Source: Penicillus capitatus
Taxonomy: Eukaryota; Plantae; Chlorophyta
Assembly: GCA_965649825.1 (NCBI GenBank)
Contig: OZ287704.1
Location: forward strand, 852,301 to 916,300
Length of the DNA stretch: 64,000 nucleotides
Direction of reading: 5' to 3'
Each line of letters begins with the position of its first letter. Position 1 is the first letter of the stretch. Below the pieces are notes generated by a model that made no database searches, had not been told where the DNA came from, and was given only the letters and a program-made list of their open reading frames with translations. Of the stretch, positions 1-54,917 are shown piece after piece. A program made the position numbers and the translations under genes.

Positions 1-1871
1 GGCGGACGACTTCCTCGACAGGTGCACGGGGACGGTCCAGAGAACGGCGGGCGGAGACGCCGGATTACTGGAAGTGCAGGACCTGCTGGTTCGCGCGCTC
101 GGGACGTCGGCTTCCATCCAGGGCTTCACGGCGTCCGTCCGTGGAGAGGAACTCGAGTGCCGGAACGCGCACGCGGTCGTCCGCACCGCCCGGGGGGACG
201 GCAAGGAAGGCATCGTGTTCGTCACTCCGCTGAGGAGGCCGCGAGGTGAGGCAGACGCGTGACCTCTGCCCGTCTGACGGCTATGTATGGTCATGGAGGA
301 CCCGGCGACGGCCCCGAGGCTCTGTGCGTGGCGCTGAGCGCCGGGGTGGCCTTGACGCGCCACCTGTCGCAGGCGAAGTGGCTGTCCAAGGACTTCGTCT
401 GGCTGGTCACCGACTCGCGCTGCGGCGAGGAAGAGTCGATGCGTCGCTGGCTGACGCGATACCACTCCCAGGCAAGCGGTCGGCTCCTCCCGGCCTGTCG
501 CGGATGTGGTTGTCCGAAGGACGCCGAGGGGCGCGGTGCGTTCCGCCGAGCGGGTCTCCTCGTCCAGGCCGTGGTCATGGAGACCGAGGACGCCGAGTCC
601 GACGAACTGGAGTACTCGCTCGTGAACTCGGGGGGACGGCTGTCCAAGATGGAGCTGTACTGGCTCGTCAAGTCTGCCGCGGAGGACCTCCTCGGCGCAA
701 AGAGCCGCCTCGACGCCGGCGCCTTCTCATCCCTCTGCCGCGGAACGGCGTCGAGCCACGAGGTGCGGCGCCGTCGCGTCATTGGCGGAGATCCCTTACA
801 GCTTTCGCCAGGGGACGGGGGCGTGGCGGACGATGCTCTGCTCCGTGCTGCTGCAGGCGACGGGCGTCCGCGCGGGTCCGCACGCTCCCTTTCGCGAGTG
901 GTCGATCGACGCCGTCGCCGTCAGGGCTCCGTCGCGCCTCGCGCGAGCGCGGGGAGACCCGCAGCTGACGGCCGTCGCGCTCTCTCGGGTGGCGGAGTCG
1001 GCGGTGCGCTCGTGCAGCAATCTGGTCGAGCGGCTCAACCGCTCCTACTACTACTACCTGATGGTCAGCACGGATCGTTTCGTCCCGGTCGAAGTCTACA
1101 TTCTCCCCTCCGTCCTGCTGCTCCTCTCCGTCCTCGTCAAGGTGACAGCAGATGCCACTCCTCTGACGCCGTGTACCCAGCGTCCGCGACAGGCGGTGGA
1201 TTTCGGAAGGCGAGCCTCGCTCGACCTGAACGGACGGGCTGGCATGTCGGCGTGCGCTGTCGGCTTCCTCCTCCTGGTGGCCTGGATCAGCGCGGCGTCC
1301 ATGGCGCGGACCGTCGCGAAGTGCCTCGCCGGACGCGGCGCGTCGAGTCACGAAGGCTGTCGTCCGAGCCCCGTCGTCGTCGTCTCGCGGTTCCTCAGTT
1401 TCTGTCTGTCGGCTTCCGCGGCCTTCGACCTGTATCGCGGGCTGCGTCGAGCGGGACCGGCTGCTTCCTCTCTCGTGCCGTGGCTCTGGACGGCCTCGAT
1501 GTGCTCTGCCGTCGTCGCCGTCGTCGCCGTCACCTGCACCAACTGGTGGGCGCCTCTCGGGACGGGTTTCGCAGACGGCGTTTGGACGCAGGTGTGTGGC
1601 CTTCATCGGCGCCGAGGCGGTCGGACTGCTTTCTCTGTCTGTCTCTCTCTTCCTCTCGAGGCCGTCGGGTTCGAAGTTCCTCGTCGTCTGCTGTCTGCTT
1701 GTGGTCCTCTCTCCCCCCAGTCTGGCCTTCTTCCCGCTGGTGCTGGCAGATAACCGGATCGATTTGTGGGATCTCGCAGGCGGATCGACGACGAGCGGCG
1801 TCGTCTTCTGGGCCGTCGCTTACCTCCCTTTCTGGCTGACGGCACTCTTCGTCGCCTTCAAGAGACATTGA
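1..1871 (+). CDS. GAA1: GPI transamidase component GAA1/GPAA1 (5' end outside window; introns 246-298, ~763-810, 1546-1591)
   Basis: Spliced translation gives RGDGKEGIVFV, HLSQAKWLSKDFVWLVTD, LLQATGVRAGPHAPFREWSIDAV, NLVERLNRSYYYYLM and a multi-TM C-terminus ending LPFWLTALFVAFKRH*, all typical of Gaa1. Three short GT-AG introns explain the ORF frame changes. Confidence 0.82.
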
Positions 1872-2527
1872 CGAACGTTAAGGCGCGGGCGAACGCACTG
1901 GTGTCCGTTCTCTCCGTTCGCTGTCGCCGTTTGGGTTGAGCAGCGGAGCAAGCCCACACCTTGTGCGCGTGACGTCGCGTCACCCGAAGGCCCTGAAATC
2001 TTTCTCTGCGGCAGTCGACCACGGAACGCGCGGCTTTAGACTGTGTCGCCGACGTTGGGTCTTCCGGACATGTCAGCGACGCGTGGACGCGGCGCGATCG
2101 CAGAGAGAAACGACTGCCAGCTGCCCAGTCTTCGCCGAAAGTCCGACGGCAGGGCCGACCGCAGTTCGGATTCGTAGACGGTCTCTCTTCGGAGCTGTGG
2201 CACACGCTCCGACGGCCACTCCTAGAGACGGACTTACCGGAGAGATAGATGCCCGCAGCTCGACTGCGGACCTCGACAGATTGTCCATAGACATTTGTCT
2301 GCATAGGCGTAAAAGATCAGCAGGGCTGCTTCGTGTCACGGCGCTTCTGCACACAGCTCCCCTGGCCTGTTGGCCTGGGCATCCGCCATGCAACGGCCGA
2401 AACCCCACGCCACCACCGCCTGACCGTTTGCCTGCAACCGACGCGGCTTCTAGCCGATCTGCGGTTGAGTTTGTTCGCATTTTCGTTTCCAGGCGCTCGT
2501 TTCCTTCAGACGACGAACTTCACGACG

Positions 2528-7303: not shown

Positions 7304-9452
7304 ATGTCCTTAGTTCTCCGGTCAAGAGCGCTCTTTTCGGCGTGGCAGTCGCAATCTACCTCTGCGGACGGTTCGTCAGGTTTTCAGAGGCGGAACAAAT
7401 GCGACAGGAGCACATCCTTTTCGAGAACTGCCTCCATTCGTCAGCAAGGCGTTGCCGAATCCTCGTAAGAAACGGACAGCCGCCGAGCAGCAGCCAAATG
7501 CTTCGCCGCATTTCTTAGGAACCAGACGTACGCAGCCGGCGCTTTGACAGAGACATCTGAAGCGATCCCGGACAAACTCGATAAGGATGTAAGGTAGAGT
7601 GAAGTCAGACTCGCCGAAGCAGTCTGTTTCACTTCGTCGTTTGTGTCGCGGCCAGCATTACTGCCGAGTCTTCGAAGAAGTACCAGGGAAAGAGGGCGCT
7701 CGTGGTTGGAGCTGGTCCAGCTGGTGCCGCGGCGGCAGCATTTCTCGCCAGACAAGGATTTACTGTCAAGGTTACCGCTTTCTGTATTAAAACCGGTCGT
7801 TGATGTCGCAGCTAGGTGTACGAGAGACGCGAAGATCCTTTGAAAGAGCAATACTCACTGAAGCGCGTGAATGGCATCCGTTTGATGAAAAACACCGTCA
7901 GTGTGATGAAAGAGATCGGTGTAGAACTTCCCAGCGACGGCCACAGAAACGAAGTTTGGAAGCTAAAAGGTCGTTACACAGAAGGAAAGTTTGCGATGCG
8001 AGCTTAGTGTTGTAGGATATGTGTCGTTGTACGATACACGATCTCCAGCTACGAACCAATCGAATCCTGCACATGACGGAGCGTACTATGGACAGAGAAA
8101 CAAGATCTCCGAGATTCTGACGGAGGATGTGCGAAGGATATACGCAGAGAGAGTCACGTTCCACTACAACCACAGATGCACAGTCTAGCTGTTCCAGTCA
8201 GTGCGATATTGATCGTACCGTCATTTGTCGTCTAGGATATCGCCTTTGATAACAGACGCGTGACATTCGAAGACAGCAACGGAGATGTCGTCACAGAGGA
8301 CTATGATCTGCTGATCGGAGCAGACGGGGTTTTCTCAATCGTCAGAGAAAAACTGCAAGAACACGATCCAGCGTTCAGAGTTAAGAAGTTCACTAACTTG
8401 TGGTCGACGAAGACAGTTCCGGATGCCCCGCTCGTCGATGAACGAGGTATCGTTACTACTGATGCGGTCTTGTCTAAGATGTAATGCGATAAATAGACGA
8501 GCTGATGAAATACCTCAGTTCTGGGTGGGTCGTTGGATTACAGCGTGCAGAAGAGAAGATTCGAGGTGTTACCAGACGTCGGCACGCGATACTCTTTCAT
8601 CCGATTGAAAAGAACAAGCCTCTAAGGATAGTTGCAGTGGCGATGGCGAAAACCTTTGAACAGAATATAAATGGCAAAGAGTACGAATGGACAAAGGAAT
8701 GGGCTTCCGACCACTTTTCGGAGGTTTTTTTATTCGTCAAAATGCCTCTGTGAGAGTATAGGGCGGTTGTTTGCAGCAATGGATGAAGGAATTCGGTTCG
8801 AAATTGGCGAGTGCGCCCATAACGCGGGGTTCCGACATTTGTCAAGTCCCCAGGTTGATTGGTCCAGCGACAATACTGGTTGGCGACGCTGGTCACAGTG
8901 CAACCGGTCGTGGAGGGTTGGGGTCCGTTTCGCTTGGCATTCCCTTCCTTCTACGGCGTATGCGTGCAGGGCAAATTTGGCAATCGTGGATTCGAAGGTT
9001 CTCTATGAAGCATTAGACGACGCTGAAGGAGACATAGATGCTGCGGCTAAGATTTTCAATGACCGTCGTTTTAATCGAGTGCGTTCATTTCAAGACTGGC
9101 AACTCGTACGCTTCCCCTTCATCGATCTCGAGTAAGAGGGTTTGATATGCAGATTACTGGGTACAAAGAGATCAATATACCTTTTCCGAAGAACTGGAGA
9201 TGTTTTGTCGGTTGGGCGAATATCACTGTGATGGGAGTTCTCAGGCGATGCTTTCCTAAATGGGTCTCGCTGCCTATTGGTCAAGTGAGTGAAGACGGAG
9301 AATTCACTCCTGAGAAGGTCATATGGCAAATGAAGCGAGACGCGGCAATCATTCTGGGTAAGCTATCAGGTCTCTTTGATTTCTCTGCAATCTTGTTTAC
9401 AGTACTCATGGCTTCCGCGGTTTCGTTACCGCTGGTTTACCTGTTGTTCTGA
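7304..9452 (+). CDS. FAD-dependent monooxygenase (class A, kynurenine 3-monooxygenase/UbiH-like), paralog 1
   Basis: Spliced model has a transit-peptide-like N-terminus, GAGPAG Rossmann motif, DLLIGADG, LVGDAGH motif and a C-terminal TM helix. All introns are GT-AG and the frame is intact. Confidence 0.85.
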
Positions 9453-49680: not shown

Positions 49681-49843
49681 ATGTACACACTAAAGAGACA
49701 CCTATGGCAAAACAGCACTTCTGTCAATGGTGTCTAGAGCGCGATGGGACTCTCTCTTCCAGAAATGTCCAATGACACAAGTAATGTCGATAGCTACAAG
49801 AGAAGAAAGAAAGCAATCGTTAGAACAGATTTTTGTCCCGGAG

Positions 49844-49912
49844 TATCTCCCAGATGGACGCCCCCTGGTTAAACAGGATCTGTGTAACCAGGGGACGTTC
49901 ATCTGGCGGATA
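49844..49912. repeat. Long inverted repeat / hairpin (26-bp stem, 5-nt loop)
   Basis: CCAGATGGACGCCCCCTGGTTAAACA (49850-49875) pairs with TGTGTAACCAGGGGACGTTCATCTGG (49881-49906): 23/26 Watson-Crick plus one G-T. Extended by TATC/GATA. Confidence 0.9.
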
Positions 49913-50029
49913 GACCGCAGACAAAAATTGTGATACATCTCGAAACCGATAACGGTTGTCGAGAGACCCGAGTTGGTGAGTAAGAAAGATGGAAGATTTG
50001 AGAGGCGAATCACCTCCCCCAGAGAGTGC

Positions 50030-50232
50030 GGCCGATGGGCCCGAGCCCGCTCGACGCGGTGGCGAACGGATCGCCACCGCGGAGAGCCGCTTCGTCGCGG
50101 CCAGAGAGCCCGAGCCCGCTCGACGCAGACGGACTGGCCGTTGTGCGGAGCACCGCTTCGTCGCGGCAATGGGCTCGAGCCCGCTCGACGCGGCGGCGAA
50201 CGGATCGCCACCGCGGAGCGCCGCGTGGTCGC
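50030..50232. repeat. Three GC-rich 65-69 bp tandem units with internal palindromes
   Basis: GAGCCCGCTCGACGC at 50043, 50112 and 50177. Unit 1 contains the perfect stem CGCGGTGGCGA-acgga-TCGCCACCGCG. Confidence 0.85.
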
Positions 50233-50385
50233 ATCCGAACCTGCATGCACACGAACAAACAGAGGGAATGCTTTTGGGTACCTGGAGAGGTTGTCGAAGA
50301 AATCCAAGAAACTTGGCGAGTATCGTCGGACGAAGTGAATTGTTTTTTGCTGTCAAACTCGAGTTAAATAGTCTTCTGTTGTAGT

Positions 50386-50607
50386 AGATCCGACAGTTGA
50401 TCCGACGGCTGACTGGAGATCCGACGGCTGACCGGAGATCCGACGGCTGGCCCTACGGCTGGCCAGTGATCCGACAATTGATCCGACGGCTGGCCCTACG
50501 GCTGGCCAGTGATCCGACAATTGATCCGACGGCTGGCCCTACGGCTGGCCAGTGATCCGACAATTGATCCGACGGCTGGCCAGAGATCCGATCATTTTCA
50601 ACTGTCG
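50386..50607. repeat. GATCCGAC-rich minisatellite (43-bp unit x3 plus partial units) bounded by a 10-bp inverted repeat
   Basis: Unit GATCCGACGGCTGGCCCTACGGCTGGCCAGTGATCCGACAATT. CGACAGTTGA at 50391-50400 and its inverse TCAACTGTCG at 50598-50607. Confidence 0.88.
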
Positions 50608-50884: not shown

Positions 50885-50908
50885 TTACAGACGAACAAAC
50901 ACATTACA
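50885..50908 (-). promoter_or_regulatory. Two TGTAA poly(A)-type signals downstream of AspRS
   Basis: TTACA on plus at 50885-50889 and 50904-50908, 50-70 nt after the AspRS stop. UGUAA is the established chlorophyte near-upstream element. Confidence 0.55.
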
Positions 50909-50957: not shown

Positions 50958-52986
50958 CTACACTGTTCGCTGTTGCTCATGATCCGACAACAATCCTGTG
51001 AGCTGATCAGCATTTGGTAGAGAAGGGGCATGTGTCAGGAGACACTCAGCCTGAGTCGTCTTGGGGAAGGCAATCACATCACGAATCGATGCACTTCCTG
51101 AGAGAAGCATTGCCAGACGATCGATGCCGAAGGCGATGCCTCCATGAGGAGGGGCGCCAGAATCCAAAGCATCCAGGAGAAACCCAAACTGATCCTGCAC
51201 TTCAGACAGCGACAAGCCGATCGTCGAAAACACCTTCTCCTGCATCTCTCTCCTGTAGTTTCTAAGACTCCCGCCTCCGATCTCATTGCCATTGAACACC
51301 AGATCATAAGCCATGGCCGTGACATGATTCCATGGACCCCGTTGAGGGATGGATGAGGGCTTGGGCGCCGTGAAAGGATGGTGAAGGCATTCGAATCTTT
51401 CCTCCTCTTCGTTCCACTCTACCAACGGAAAATCGACGATCCAAACAAGGCAGTACTGGCTCTCATCTGTGTCTCCCAGTTTTTTGCCAAGGTATGTCCT
51501 TAGTCGATCCAAGCTCTTGTTCACTGTCTTTTCATTATCGGCCACAATCAACAGCAGATCTCCTGGATGTGCTTCGCATGAAGAGATGAGATCTTTGGTC
51601 TGGAAGGCGGTGAAGCCATCCAGAACTGCCTTGCTTGCGTCGATCTCTCCTTCATCTTTGATTCGAATGTAGGTCAGACCTTTTGCCCCTGCTGACTGAA
51701 TCTCTTGTCCCACATCTCCCTTTGCCTTCAGTCTTGTATTCGACAGCCGTTGACCGTCTGGAATTCTGAGAGCTTTGACACGACCTCCGGATGCAATGCT
51801 GTCCGAAAAGACTTTAAAAGAAGACGCTTCTGCTATTGGTGAGATGTCGTAGAGGCGAAAGGGACATCGCAGATCTGGCCGATCGGTACCATACGAACGC
51901 ATAGCTTCTTCGTAGGTGAGTCTAGGAAACGGTCTCCGTACGTCCACACCCTTCATCTCTGCAAAGAGTTTGCTAACCATGTCTTCGATCAACGTCAAAA
52001 TGGATTCCATGTCCATGAAGGCCATTTCCATATCCAACTGTGTGAATTCCGGCTGCCGATCGGCACGAAGGTCTTCGTCACGGAAACACCGAGCGATCTG
52101 GTAATACCTAGATTCCACACACGTATAACCTGAGTGGCTATGATGGACAGATAGATGACCTATCAAATCCCGAAACCATGAGCATCTGTTTGAAGAGTTG
52201 CGGGCTCTGCGGAAGCGCATAATATTTTCCGGGCCGATTGCGTGAGGGGACGAGATAGTCACGTGCACCTTCGGGTGTCGCTTTTGTCAGAATGGGTGTC
52301 TCGATTTCGACGAATTCAGCCTCGTCCTCCAGATACCGTCGCAAACATTTCACCATTCTGTGACGCAAACGGAGATTTGCTGCCATGACGGGACGCCTCA
52401 GATCCAAAATCTTCTCCCTCAGCCGTATCTCTTCTCCCGGCATCTCTGTCTCTTCCGACCCGCTAATGGAAAAGGGCAAGATTTTCTTCATCGTGTTGAG
52501 CAGGGTGATGTGACAGGCCACAATTTCGAAGGAGCCGGTTGGAAGTAGAGGATTGGGTTGCATCCGCTGACGAACCTTTCCCGAAATACAGACAACGGAT
52601 TCCAACTTGAGCTCACGGCCTGCGGTCCAGACATCTGGCTGCGATGCACGATCTGTAGTGACTTGAACAATGCCACTCTGATCTCGAATATCCAAAAAGA
52701 GTATCTGACCGTGATCTCGACGTCGATCCACCCAGCCACAGATCTGAACCTCACGATCCACCATTTCATGCCCTACCTCTCCACAGTACAACGATCGACG
52801 TGGCCACGTTATCTCTGCCTCTCGTCCAGTCTTTTCCGAAACGCTAGTGGCGACACTCGATGCGTCTCGCTCGGCATGGCATCGAAATGTGAATGTCTTC
52901 GACGATCTGTGCAAGGCCAGCATCCGTGGTCGGAGCGTTTGTGTGACAATTGGCGGCAATCGCATGAGTGATCGGCACAGCATCAT
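50958..52986 (-). CDS. aspS: Organellar (bacterial-type) aspartyl-tRNA synthetase
   Basis: Transit peptide, OB-fold (GWVDRRRDHG), [57 protein letters not shown], GAD insert, GAPPHGGIAFGIDR. One intron. Confidence 0.97.
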
Positions 52987-52989
52987 CGC

Positions 52990-53483
52990 TTAATTGATGT
53001 AGACGATGAAGAAAACCAAAAGCAACGTCAGGAATGAATACTTGAAGGCAGTCGCTGCAATGGAGAAGCAAACGACGATCAAACGCAGTCCAATATTCAC
53101 CGTCGCTGCAAAGATCAACACGCCGATGCCCAAAGCAACGATCTCCTGCAAATTGTTGACGGGCCCGGAATCGTACTGACACATCTCACGGGGTCAGTAA
53201 CGAAACGCCTGTCTTTCAGACGCACTTCGAAAAGGTCGAGCTCTTCGCGCAGCTCTTCTTCAGTAAGAAGATCAATAGGTTCCCAGTTATCCTCCGATGC
53301 TTCTTCAAACACTTCGACGTCGTCCCAGTCTGTCGGCGTCGACGTCAGAGGACGGCAGCAGGTGCGACGAATAGGGGTTAGGTATAGTCGCTTCAGCAGT
53401 CGTCGACAAGGGATACGTGATCGGGGGACGGGCGCGACACGACGAGGCACAGAAGTGGTCGGCGAAACACGAATGCTTAACAT
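52990..53483 (-). CDS. 150-aa uncharacterised membrane protein, likely plastid-targeted
   Basis: ATG 53483. Arg/Ser-rich transit peptide, acidic patch, 41-nt intron 53225-53185, then two TM helices and TAA at 52990-52992. Confidence 0.7.
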
Positions 53484-53813
53484 ATGAAGGCGTTCTACGT
53501 TACGCCATCAAGTGTTAGATGAAGGATGTGAATGAAGGGCAACTAAGCTAGACAGAGTGGGAGATGAAATCCTTGGCAGGGAGGGCATCTCTGTTGGACC
53601 TCGGGAATAGAAAACAGCAAAAGATCATCGCCAAGTAATACCAGTGTTCTGTTGATCTTGCAGGTTTCGTTCTACGTCAGCAATAGAAATTGAATTGGGT
53701 GACAACGATGGCAGAAGGGTTAGAAAGGATGCACGTCCGAGTGTTGTTTCGTAGGTTCAAATGAGGTGAGATGAAATGAAATACTTCTACGCAATGATCG
53801 CTTGGTCAGCGGC

Positions 53814-54917
53814 CTACGGCTTGACTCTACAGACAGCCAAGCCATCCGCTGCAGGAATTAGCCAGTAATGCACTCTTTCATCAGAAAATAGTTTTCTATT
53901 TAATCCTCTCATGAAGCACGTCACTTCGTCGTGAGCCTGTTCGCATGATAGATGAATGCTTCACAGGTATTGTGGAGTGAAAGAGAGTAGATACCTTTGA
54001 GTTGGCGACTTGTGAAAAATTGAGGACGTTGTCCATCACAATCAAGCCTCCAGGCTTCACGAGCAGCAAAAGTTTCTCGTAGTAGACATCGTAGTTGAGT
54101 TTGTCGGCATCTGTATTGCCAGAGAAGAAATGACGATTGCCGAGATCCGGGGAGAGAGATGAGAGTTACCGATAAATGCCAGATCGACTTTCTGTGAGTA
54201 TCCTTCTTGATGCAGGCAGTCCAGTACCATTGCAGCATCGCCAAGGCGAGCATCGATCTATACACAGGCTTGCAGGATGCTGCCGGGCACAGGTGTTCGA
54301 TGGTCACACTTTCTGTAGGACGTGCGCCTTTCTCCAGTATCTCTTCGCCATTTCCAAATACTTATCTCGTTGGTCAATTGTGATCACAAGCCCGTCGTTA
54401 GGTATTGACTGCCAGCACAACAAAACAGCACTTGTTCAGTACAGTGTTGTGTGGCAAAGATCGACAACCAAGGCGAATTGCAAGGCCGAAAGGCCAGTGT
54501 AAGTACCAATATCCACAATGCACTTTGCTTGTGTGAGTTGAGCGAGCATTGCCATCACAGGTAACTGATCAATTGTTGTGGCCATGACGGAGTCCGGCAG
54601 CAATAACGTCTCATTCCTTAAATCGCGTATTACCTAAAGCCCCTCCCTCTGTGCGTCACGCCTCGCTACATCGCCGAAGCTGACTTGATCCACAGAGGAA
54701 TGATCCACGATGTAGTCATGAAGACTGCTCTGTAAATCCGGTTGACTCCACACTTTCTTGTGTAGCATTTTGTCATCCACTGCCATCTGAAGACAGAGTC
54801 TGCGCAACAGATCTCGATGCGACGTGTTTCGGACTGGGAATGGCTGTTGACAGACTTGGCGTTCAGAGGCATGTCGCTGTTGTCTTCAAGTGACGCCTGC
54901 GATACATAGATGCCCAT
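53814..54917 (-). CDS. Class I SAM O-methyltransferase (caffeoyl-CoA OMT / Methyltransf_3), paralog 1
   Basis: IVDIGTYTGLSALQF, DADKLNYDVYYEKLLLLVKPGGLIVMDNVL, IPAADGLAVC. Start codon uncertain. Confidence 0.88.

Follow-up and report, generated by a model that had tools for sequence, protein, structure and literature searches.

How is the aspartyl-tRNA synthetase (AspRS) of an algal organelle made when its start codon lies three nucleotides (nt) past the stop codon of another gene? The question is raised by a locus in a 64,000-nt stretch of Penicillus capitatus DNA (GenBank assembly GCA_965649825.1, contig OZ287704.1, positions 852,301 to 916,300), which we call the window throughout and number from its first letter. 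On the minus strand of the window a small open reading frame (ORF) with a hydrophobic C-terminus, here ORF1, directly precedes the AspRS gene. The original prediction, made from the letters of the window, proposed that one mRNA encodes both proteins and that AspRS is made from it by leaky scanning, by termination-reinitiation or by stop readthrough. From comparison with related algae we consider it likely that both ORFs share one mRNA and that leaky scanning brings ribosomes to the AspRS start. The one-mRNA proposal fits the conserved pairing of the genes, the selection on ORF1 and the freedom of ORF1 from ATGs, all of them comparative observations; among the routes to AspRS, leaky scanning held up and readthrough did not.

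The ORF1–AspRS junction

The in-frame junction described in the original prediction was borne out when its coordinates were re-read on the minus strand: ORF1 ends at TAA (52992-52990), a single GCG (52989-52987) follows, and AspRS opens with ATG ATG (52986-52981), the frame being the same throughout. Since a 3-nt spacer leaves no room for a poly(A) site and a promoter, we counted it toward one shared mRNA, and because the gene pair, its order and its strand recur in at least five other lineages, the junction reflects more than chance. The features of the locus, all on the minus strand, are as follows; L001, L003 and L005 are orthologous loci introduced below.

53500-53508, minus strand: two-codon mini upstream ORF (uORF), ATGGCGTAA, 25 nt before the start codon of ORF1; it belongs to the 5' leader unless transcription begins downstream of it
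53226-53483, minus strand: ORF1 exon 1, 86 codons, in which a presequence-like N-terminus is followed by an acidic region up to ...EELDLFE; the donor lies directly after TTCGAA, as in L001, L003 and L005
53176-53225, minus strand: ORF1 intron, 50 nt, GTGCGT...TTACTGAC...GTCAG, fixed by orthologues
52990-53175, minus strand: ORF1 exon 2, 61 codons plus TAA, with the YDSGPVNNLQE linker, the hydrophobic C-terminus of ~55 residues, R117 and AFKYS
52987-52989, minus strand: inter-ORF spacer GCG, in frame; GAA and GCA in the sister genomes L001 and L003, respectively
52160-52986, minus strand: AspRS exon 1, starting ATGATG, with a transit-like N-terminal extension, the OB anticodon-binding domain and the first part of the catalytic core
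52108-52159, minus strand: AspRS intron, 52 nt, GTCATC...TCTAG, interrupting a 15-residue motif; its counterpart in L001, identically placed, has 49 nt
50958-52107, minus strand: AspRS exon 2 to stop TAG (50960-50958), the catalytic core with its GAD insertion
50908-50904 and 50889-50885, minus strand: two TGTAA motifs, putative poly(A) signals for both ORFs, without counterparts in L001 and L003

Gene models of ORF1 and AspRS

ORF1 had been predicted as a 150-residue spliced product, a model we corrected: read from ATG 53483 with the single 50-nt intron supported by orthologues (53225-53176), it has 147 residues (444 nt), and its stop, the spacer and the frame are unchanged. The intron has its donor GTGCGT directly after TTCGAA, a branch-like element TTACTGAC and its acceptor GTCAG directly before TACGAT, so that exon 2 opens with YDSGPVNNLQEIVALG; in L005 the intron sits directly after ...LELFE and exon 2 opens with YESGPVSNIQELVALG. 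Downstream of the intron the orthologues conserve the peptide Y[DEA]SGPV..QE. Relative to L001 the intron differs by a 1-nt indel (50 versus 49 nt), so the stretch behaves as an intron, as a coding stretch could not tolerate such a change. We rejected the alternative intron 53189-53146 that the 150-codon model apparently needs; this stretch encodes the conserved YDSGPVNNLQE, and the model runs into a frame problem in L001.

Existing annotation of ORF1 is sparse. It was found annotated only in Bryopsis and Ostreobium and is called unspliced in metagenome assemblies; in ENA assembly ERZ25074695, where gene calling was prokaryote-style, it is listed only as an unspliced 122-residue ORF (P0001). 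The spliceosomal introns of these loci are tiny, at 43-52 nt (window 53176-53225 and 52108-52159; L001:6259-6307 and 7324-7372; L005:476-518), and the AspRS intron of the window has an unusual donor, GTCATC, where a sister genome has GTAATA.

The AspRS gene (52986-52160 joined to 52107-50958 across a 52-nt intron) encodes 658 residues with Pfam matches to PF01336 (tRNA_anti-codon), PF00152 (tRNA-synt_2, E-value 2.5e-117) and PF02938 (GAD), by which we assign it the bacterial-type class II architecture of OB domain, class II core and GAD domain. Its closest named relatives are green-algal, at 53-60% identity (Bryopsis, Chlorella sorokiniana, Ostreobium, Micractinium and Volvox), followed by cyanobacterial AspRS. 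Compared with the 595-residue cyanobacterial enzymes it is ~63 residues longer, the extension being basic and N-terminal, and its first 40 residues are basic and hydroxylated (8 R/K, 1 D/E).

The N-terminus follows the pattern M.xCR[ST]L[MI][RK] in L001, L005 and P0005 (EukProt g2928.t1). In P0005 it reads MAPLLASCRS, which aligns with the spacer and start of L005 (L005:705-731), (L)IPL-M-ASCR. This suggests that the AspRS start codon slid four codons within the frame between the two, and in the P0005 species the AspRS start may abut the ORF1 stop. A rough neighbour-joining tree of AspRS groups the window with L005 and EukProt g2928 and not with Bryopsis or Ostreobium; it does not put the window clade with Bryopsidales (11/100 bootstraps).

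The pair in related algae

The original prediction had pointed to linkage, spacer length and frame in related algae as a check. Linkage proved conserved, with ORF1 directly followed by AspRS on one strand at every locus listed here, while the spacer varied from 3 to 83 nt and only loci with spacers of 3 or 12 nt kept the two ORFs in frame. The window, L001 and L003 are treated as a single lineage.

Window (also ENA ERZ25074695): spacer 3 nt, GCG, in frame
L001 and L003, two contigs of ENA ERZ26696514 (sister genomes): spacer 3 nt, GAA and GCA, in frame
L005 and L004, JGI Botany Bay marine metagenome and Logan contig, respectively, AspRS 62% identical: spacer 12 nt, in frame
L006, Ostreobium quekettii: spacer 44 nt, out of frame
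L011, Logan contig: spacer 62 nt, out of frame
L008, Bryopsis sp. KO-2023, annotated as two genes: spacer 83 nt, out of frame

In addition, a Bryopsis-like Logan contig (L012) holds the tail of ORF1, the spacer and the whole of AspRS. No ORF1 was found upstream of AspRS in Chlorella sorokiniana, where the neighbour lies on the opposite strand and ends 220 nt away; L009, which carries only 83 nt upstream of AspRS, is uninformative on ORF1.

The two in-frame lineages, the window clade and L005, are sisters in the rough AspRS tree, and for this reason the shared frame can be counted as a single event with a one-in-three chance. As relatives have spacers of 83, 62 and 44 nt, we regard the shared frame and the 3-nt spacer as incidental by-products of genome compaction, a reading drawn from the comparison of spacers.

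Ostreobium quekettii (GCA_905146915.1) has two paralogous ORF1-AspRS loci (L006:5001-7883 and L013:4700-7076) with ~80% DNA identity. At L006 ORF1 is intact and a conserved Arg codon of AspRS is an in-frame TGA (GWVDGY*NFGG), and at L013 AspRS is intact (P0011) and ORF1 exon 2 is broken by indels of 3, 5 and 6 nt. This looks like reciprocal decay after duplication, by which a bicistronic locus would have become two single-gene loci. A transcript-like contig (L007:1-900, Logan SRR31837514) contains a spliced ORF1 (P0128, closest to that of Ostreobium) followed by 423 nt without AspRS, and ORF1 may be expressed alone in that species.

Conservation of the ORF1 protein

The predicted ORF1 protein has a transit-peptide-like beginning (12 R/K, no D/E and 19 S/T/P in the first 50 residues), an acidic region (18 D/E in residues 51-90) and ~55 hydrophobic C-terminal residues that would have space for two membrane spans. 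Its orthologues are 32-78% identical to it, and R117 and the AFKYS motif are invariant in 7 of them. Between the window and L001 the ratio of nonsynonymous to synonymous substitution rates (dN/dS) was 0.35 for ORF1 overall and 0.17 for its exon 2, as compared with 0.12 for AspRS. The original prediction would have been undermined by an untranslated and unconserved upstream ORF; ORF1 is conserved across lineages with dN/dS 0.35, so it is not an unconserved ORF, and by these measures we take it as a genuine protein-coding gene under purifying selection.

Relatives of ORF1 are few: an exhaustive HMMER search of 1.84 billion representative proteins gave 7 and a profile search gave 5. By these searches the gene is lineage-restricted, being found otherwise only in Bryopsidales genomes and unassigned contigs. 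No Pfam family scored above its cut-off with members of the ORF1 family (the best, LEM, had an E-value of 0.016, below its cut-off), none of the 7 family members matched CAAD (PF14159) at an E-value of 10 or less, and the PDB held no relative (best E-value 0.46). The AlphaFold model of ORF1 was poor (pLDDT 62, pTM 0.27), essentially a single long helix. Scans of metagenomes with the ORF1 profile and with a degenerate pattern of the spliced junction returned 76 and 41 pattern matches, respectively, with no true relative among either.

ATG depletion and start contexts

At every locus with both genes intact, namely the window, L001, L003, L005, Bryopsis and L011, the spliced ORF1 and spacer (447-536 nt) are free of internal ATGs in all frames, the Bryopsis count being taken from the second in-frame ATG (4254) and not from the annotated one (4200). 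Base shuffling led us to expect 6-10 ATGs per stretch (P ≤ 0.0014 each). When the protein was held fixed and synonymous codons were resampled, 2.4-3.9 out-of-frame ATGs were still expected (P = 0.029 in the window, 0.011 in L001, 0.0024 in L005 and 0.008 in L011), and the ORF1 proteins have no internal Met where 3-5 would be expected. In the window the two start codons have a single ATG between them, which is inside the ORF1 intron; across the loci the ORF1 introns have 0-55 ATGs per kb (1, 0, 1, 7 and 19 ATGs) and AspRS coding sequence has 20-27 per kb. The window averages 19 ATGs per kb per strand, and one genomic ATG-free run is longer, in a region of 67% GC. Two copies served as informal controls: internal ATGs in ORF1 number 2 in Ostreobium L006, where AspRS is broken, and 4 in L007, where AspRS is absent.

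A GC-rich block at 1-2000 (67% GC versus ~49% elsewhere) contains the window's longest stretch without ATG (568 nt, 1499-2072, plus strand).

The contexts of the two starts also differ. The ORF1 AUG of the window has an apparently poor context, with C at -3 and U at +4, while the AspRS AUGAUG has G at -3. Of the six lineages compared, four have a pyrimidine at -3 of ORF1 and none has G at +4 there; at AspRS, five have a purine at -3 or G at +4.

Proposed translation of the two ORFs

Taken with the conserved adjacency of the two genes, these features would be accommodated by the following course of events. A single capped mRNA would start a short distance upstream of 53483 and carry ORF1 and then, 3 nt past the ORF1 stop, the organellar AspRS. 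Part of the scanning 40S subunits would initiate at the poor-context ORF1 AUG; the remainder would scan on, meet no AUG in the spliced message and initiate at the AspRS AUGAUG, such that the two proteins would be made separately. Termination-reinitiation may add a little in the lineages with a 3-nt spacer.

Several points weigh against this proposal. We infer the single mRNA from sequence. Termination at the ORF1 stop would occur upstream of the AspRS intron, which might expose the message to nonsense-mediated decay (NMD). The lineages compared are not fully independent. With its annotated start (4200) Bryopsis has 2 internal ATGs against ~10.6 expected, and the ORF1 start has a purine at -3 in L005 and Ostreobium. 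There are also ATGs 14-28 nt upstream of the ORF1 start (at -23 and -28 in L001 and L003, and at -14 and -22 in L005). The 5' leader would accordingly be either under ~25 nt or a carrier of small uORFs, and a very short leader would itself favour leaky scanning.

Flanks of the locus

Upstream of ORF1 and on its strand lies an O-methyltransferase gene (Methyltransf_3-like; 53814-54100, minus strand, stop 53816-53814, C-terminus ...ADGLAVCRVKP*), which ends 330 nt before ORF1, as against the 3 nt that separate ORF1 from AspRS. L001 and L003 have this neighbour too.

TGTAA had been brought forward in the original prediction as a sign of a shared 3' end, and its positions were as described: between 50500 and 54100 on the minus strand it occurs only at 50908 and 50889, ~50 and 69 nt past the AspRS stop, and there is none inside ORF1 or AspRS of the window. 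Its value as evidence did not hold up, as no TGTAA follows the AspRS stop in the sister genomes L001 and L003, and we dropped it as a poly(A) marker. Just past the 3' end of AspRS there is a perfect 43-nt tandem repeat of 3.4 copies (50437-50581), and at 49700-50400 repeat-like ORFs rich in Arg, Gly, Ala and Pro lie on both strands.

Alternative explanations

The pair might instead be expressed as two overlapping monocistronic transcripts, with AspRS transcription starting inside or just upstream of ORF1 and the ORF1 mRNA polyadenylated inside the AspRS coding region. Compact algal genomes do show overlapping untranslated regions, and the uncoupling of the pair by reciprocal paralogue decay in Ostreobium shows that physical coupling is not obligatory. 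An internal transcription start would not, however, need ATGs to be purged from the first ORF1 codon onward, yet this purge is seen in four to five lineages; the absence of TGTAA from ORF1 and AspRS of the window also speaks against it, although that signal is unreliable in this lineage. We regard overlapping transcripts as unlikely.

A second alternative keeps the single mRNA and has AspRS made mainly by termination-reinitiation, with termination at the UAA and restart of the 40S subunit at the AUG 3 nt on. An AUG a few nucleotides off is within reach of 40S subunits after termination, and here the start follows the stop by 3 nt (window, L001, L003) or 12 nt (L005). Reinitiation past a 147-codon ORF is, however, normally inefficient without a dedicated element. 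Such elements, named TURBS, are known from viral termination-reinitiation in caliciviruses and in M2/BM2 of influenza B, which resemble this locus in having a stop and the next start a few nucleotides apart. The algal loci differ from them in that five of six lineages lack a UGGGA (TURBS-like) motif in the final 150 nt of ORF1, no stable structure was found at the junction of the window (fold z = +1.18), and orthologues have spacers of 44-83 nt. The purge of out-of-frame ATGs, left unexplained by reinitiation, points to scanning, and we hold reinitiation as the main route to be distinctly improbable.

Two further readings would give the junction a role at a membrane. Some aminoacyl-tRNA synthetases of cyanobacteria are held at thylakoids by a CAAD domain of two helices, and together with the CURT1 proteins they offer a comparison. 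The likeness to ORF1 is of a hydrophobic module, probably of two helices, tied to a synthetase gene of cyanobacterial ancestry; the difference is that the CAAD module lies inside the synthetase polypeptide, whereas ORF1 stands apart as an ORF that has a start, a stop and a presequence-like N-terminus of its own and no Pfam CAAD match. By analogy, ORF1 could be an organellar membrane partner of AspRS, a split counterpart of the CAAD anchor, with the 3-nt in-frame spacer enabling restart or occasional readthrough and so synthesis of the two at a fixed ratio at the membrane; we rate this idea as very unlikely.

Programmed readthrough of the ORF1 stop, giving a membrane-anchored ORF1-AspRS fusion, was one of the routes first proposed, and it has in its favour the precedent of the membrane-bound CAAD synthetases and a shared frame with a stop-free spacer in the window, L001, L003 and L005. 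Against this, the in-frame lineages amount to the single one-in-three event noted above, and the frame is lost in Ostreobium, Bryopsis and L011, whose spacers all leave a remainder of 2 on division by 3, with an in-frame TAA besides in the Bryopsis spacer. The stop and the base after it vary by lineage among TAA, TGA and TAG (TAA-G, TGA-G, TGA-T, TGA-A, TGA-T and TAG-A) with no recognised readthrough context, a fusion would bury the AspRS presequence, and the ORF1 family matches neither CAAD nor any other Pfam family above cut-off. Readthrough is on these grounds highly improbable.

That ORF1 is noncoding, a long untranslated leader or a regulatory uORF of AspRS, would suit its lack of Pfam and PDB matches and its roughly seven relatives among 1.84 billion representative proteins, but is scarcely credible in the face of amino-acid conservation over distant lineages with invariant motifs, dN/dS values of 0.17-0.35, a conserved intron position with the frame preserved, and an ORF1 that stays intact in the Ostreobium copy whose AspRS is broken.

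Relation to known bicistronic loci

The original prediction had leaned on polycistronic mRNAs being established in chlorophytes, and the literature agrees: polycistronic nuclear mRNAs have been established in Chlamydomonas, Chromochloris and Auxenochlorella (PMC7896298; PMC11291117). It had also called an in-frame 3-nt spacer an extreme case, which was overstated. Published medians of the distance between ORFs are 183-260 nt in Chlamydomonas, 212 nt in Chromochloris and 40 nt in Auxenochlorella (PMC7896298; PMC11291117), and at some Auxenochlorella loci the stop of ORF1 overlaps the start of ORF2 (Duenas et al., PMC11291117); the spacer here is at the short end of the range and has precedent. 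Duenas et al. also described the features expected of leaky scanning, namely depletion of ATG before ORF2 and a weak Kozak context at ORF1, the Kozak and start-codon part of which was tested by mutation (PMC11291117).

The likeness of the ORF1/AspRS locus to the published green-algal loci (Gallaher 2021; Duenas 2024; e.g., TOM22/SDHAF3) is close. A small ORF1 precedes a larger ORF2 (444 nt here versus medians of 291-357 nt); the two ORFs are on one strand and do not overlap, each with its own start and stop and with a short spacer between them (3 nt here, 3-83 nt in orthologues); ahead of ORF2 ATGs are depleted, and the start of ORF1 appears to sit in a weak context; and both ORFs are conserved, with their order kept over species and with organelle-related products. 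They differ in that ATG depletion is total here as compared with a published median observed/expected ratio of 0.43-0.49, and in that the published loci are defined by a single Iso-Seq transcript over both ORFs, where here the shared mRNA is predicted. CDC26/TTM3 of land plants and green algae (PMC11291117) is likewise a conserved two-ORF mRNA with a small protein before an enzyme and with an interplay with NMD to be expected, but the proteins are unrelated and CDC26 has 65 residues compared with the 147 of ORF1, which has a membrane domain.

The ORF1/AspRS pair does not appear in the texts of PMC7896298 and PMC11291117 or in the Duenas supplements, the cross-species surveys of these two papers did not include Ulvophyceae or Bryopsidales, and our literature search for a report of a nuclear bicistronic locus in siphonous, Bryopsidales-like algae found none. 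The locus is probably the first bicistronic one reported from siphonous (Bryopsidales-like) algae, of a kind already known in green algae.

Implications

The ORF1/AspRS locus reveals no new translation mechanism. Loci of this type are missed or split by gene callers, whether prokaryote-style or standard eukaryotic. Spacers of 83, 62, 44, 12 and 3 nt, the complete purge of ATGs, synonymous sites included, and the relaxation of that purge where no intact AspRS follows amount together to a natural comparative test of leaky scanning. The idea of a split anchor, if true, would couple charging of organellar tRNA-Asp to a membrane site. On the reading we favour, leaky scanning from one mRNA, an essential enzyme of organellar translation would join the green-algal genes expressed as a second cistron, and the bicistronic phenomenon would probably extend to the siphonous, Bryopsidales-like algae.

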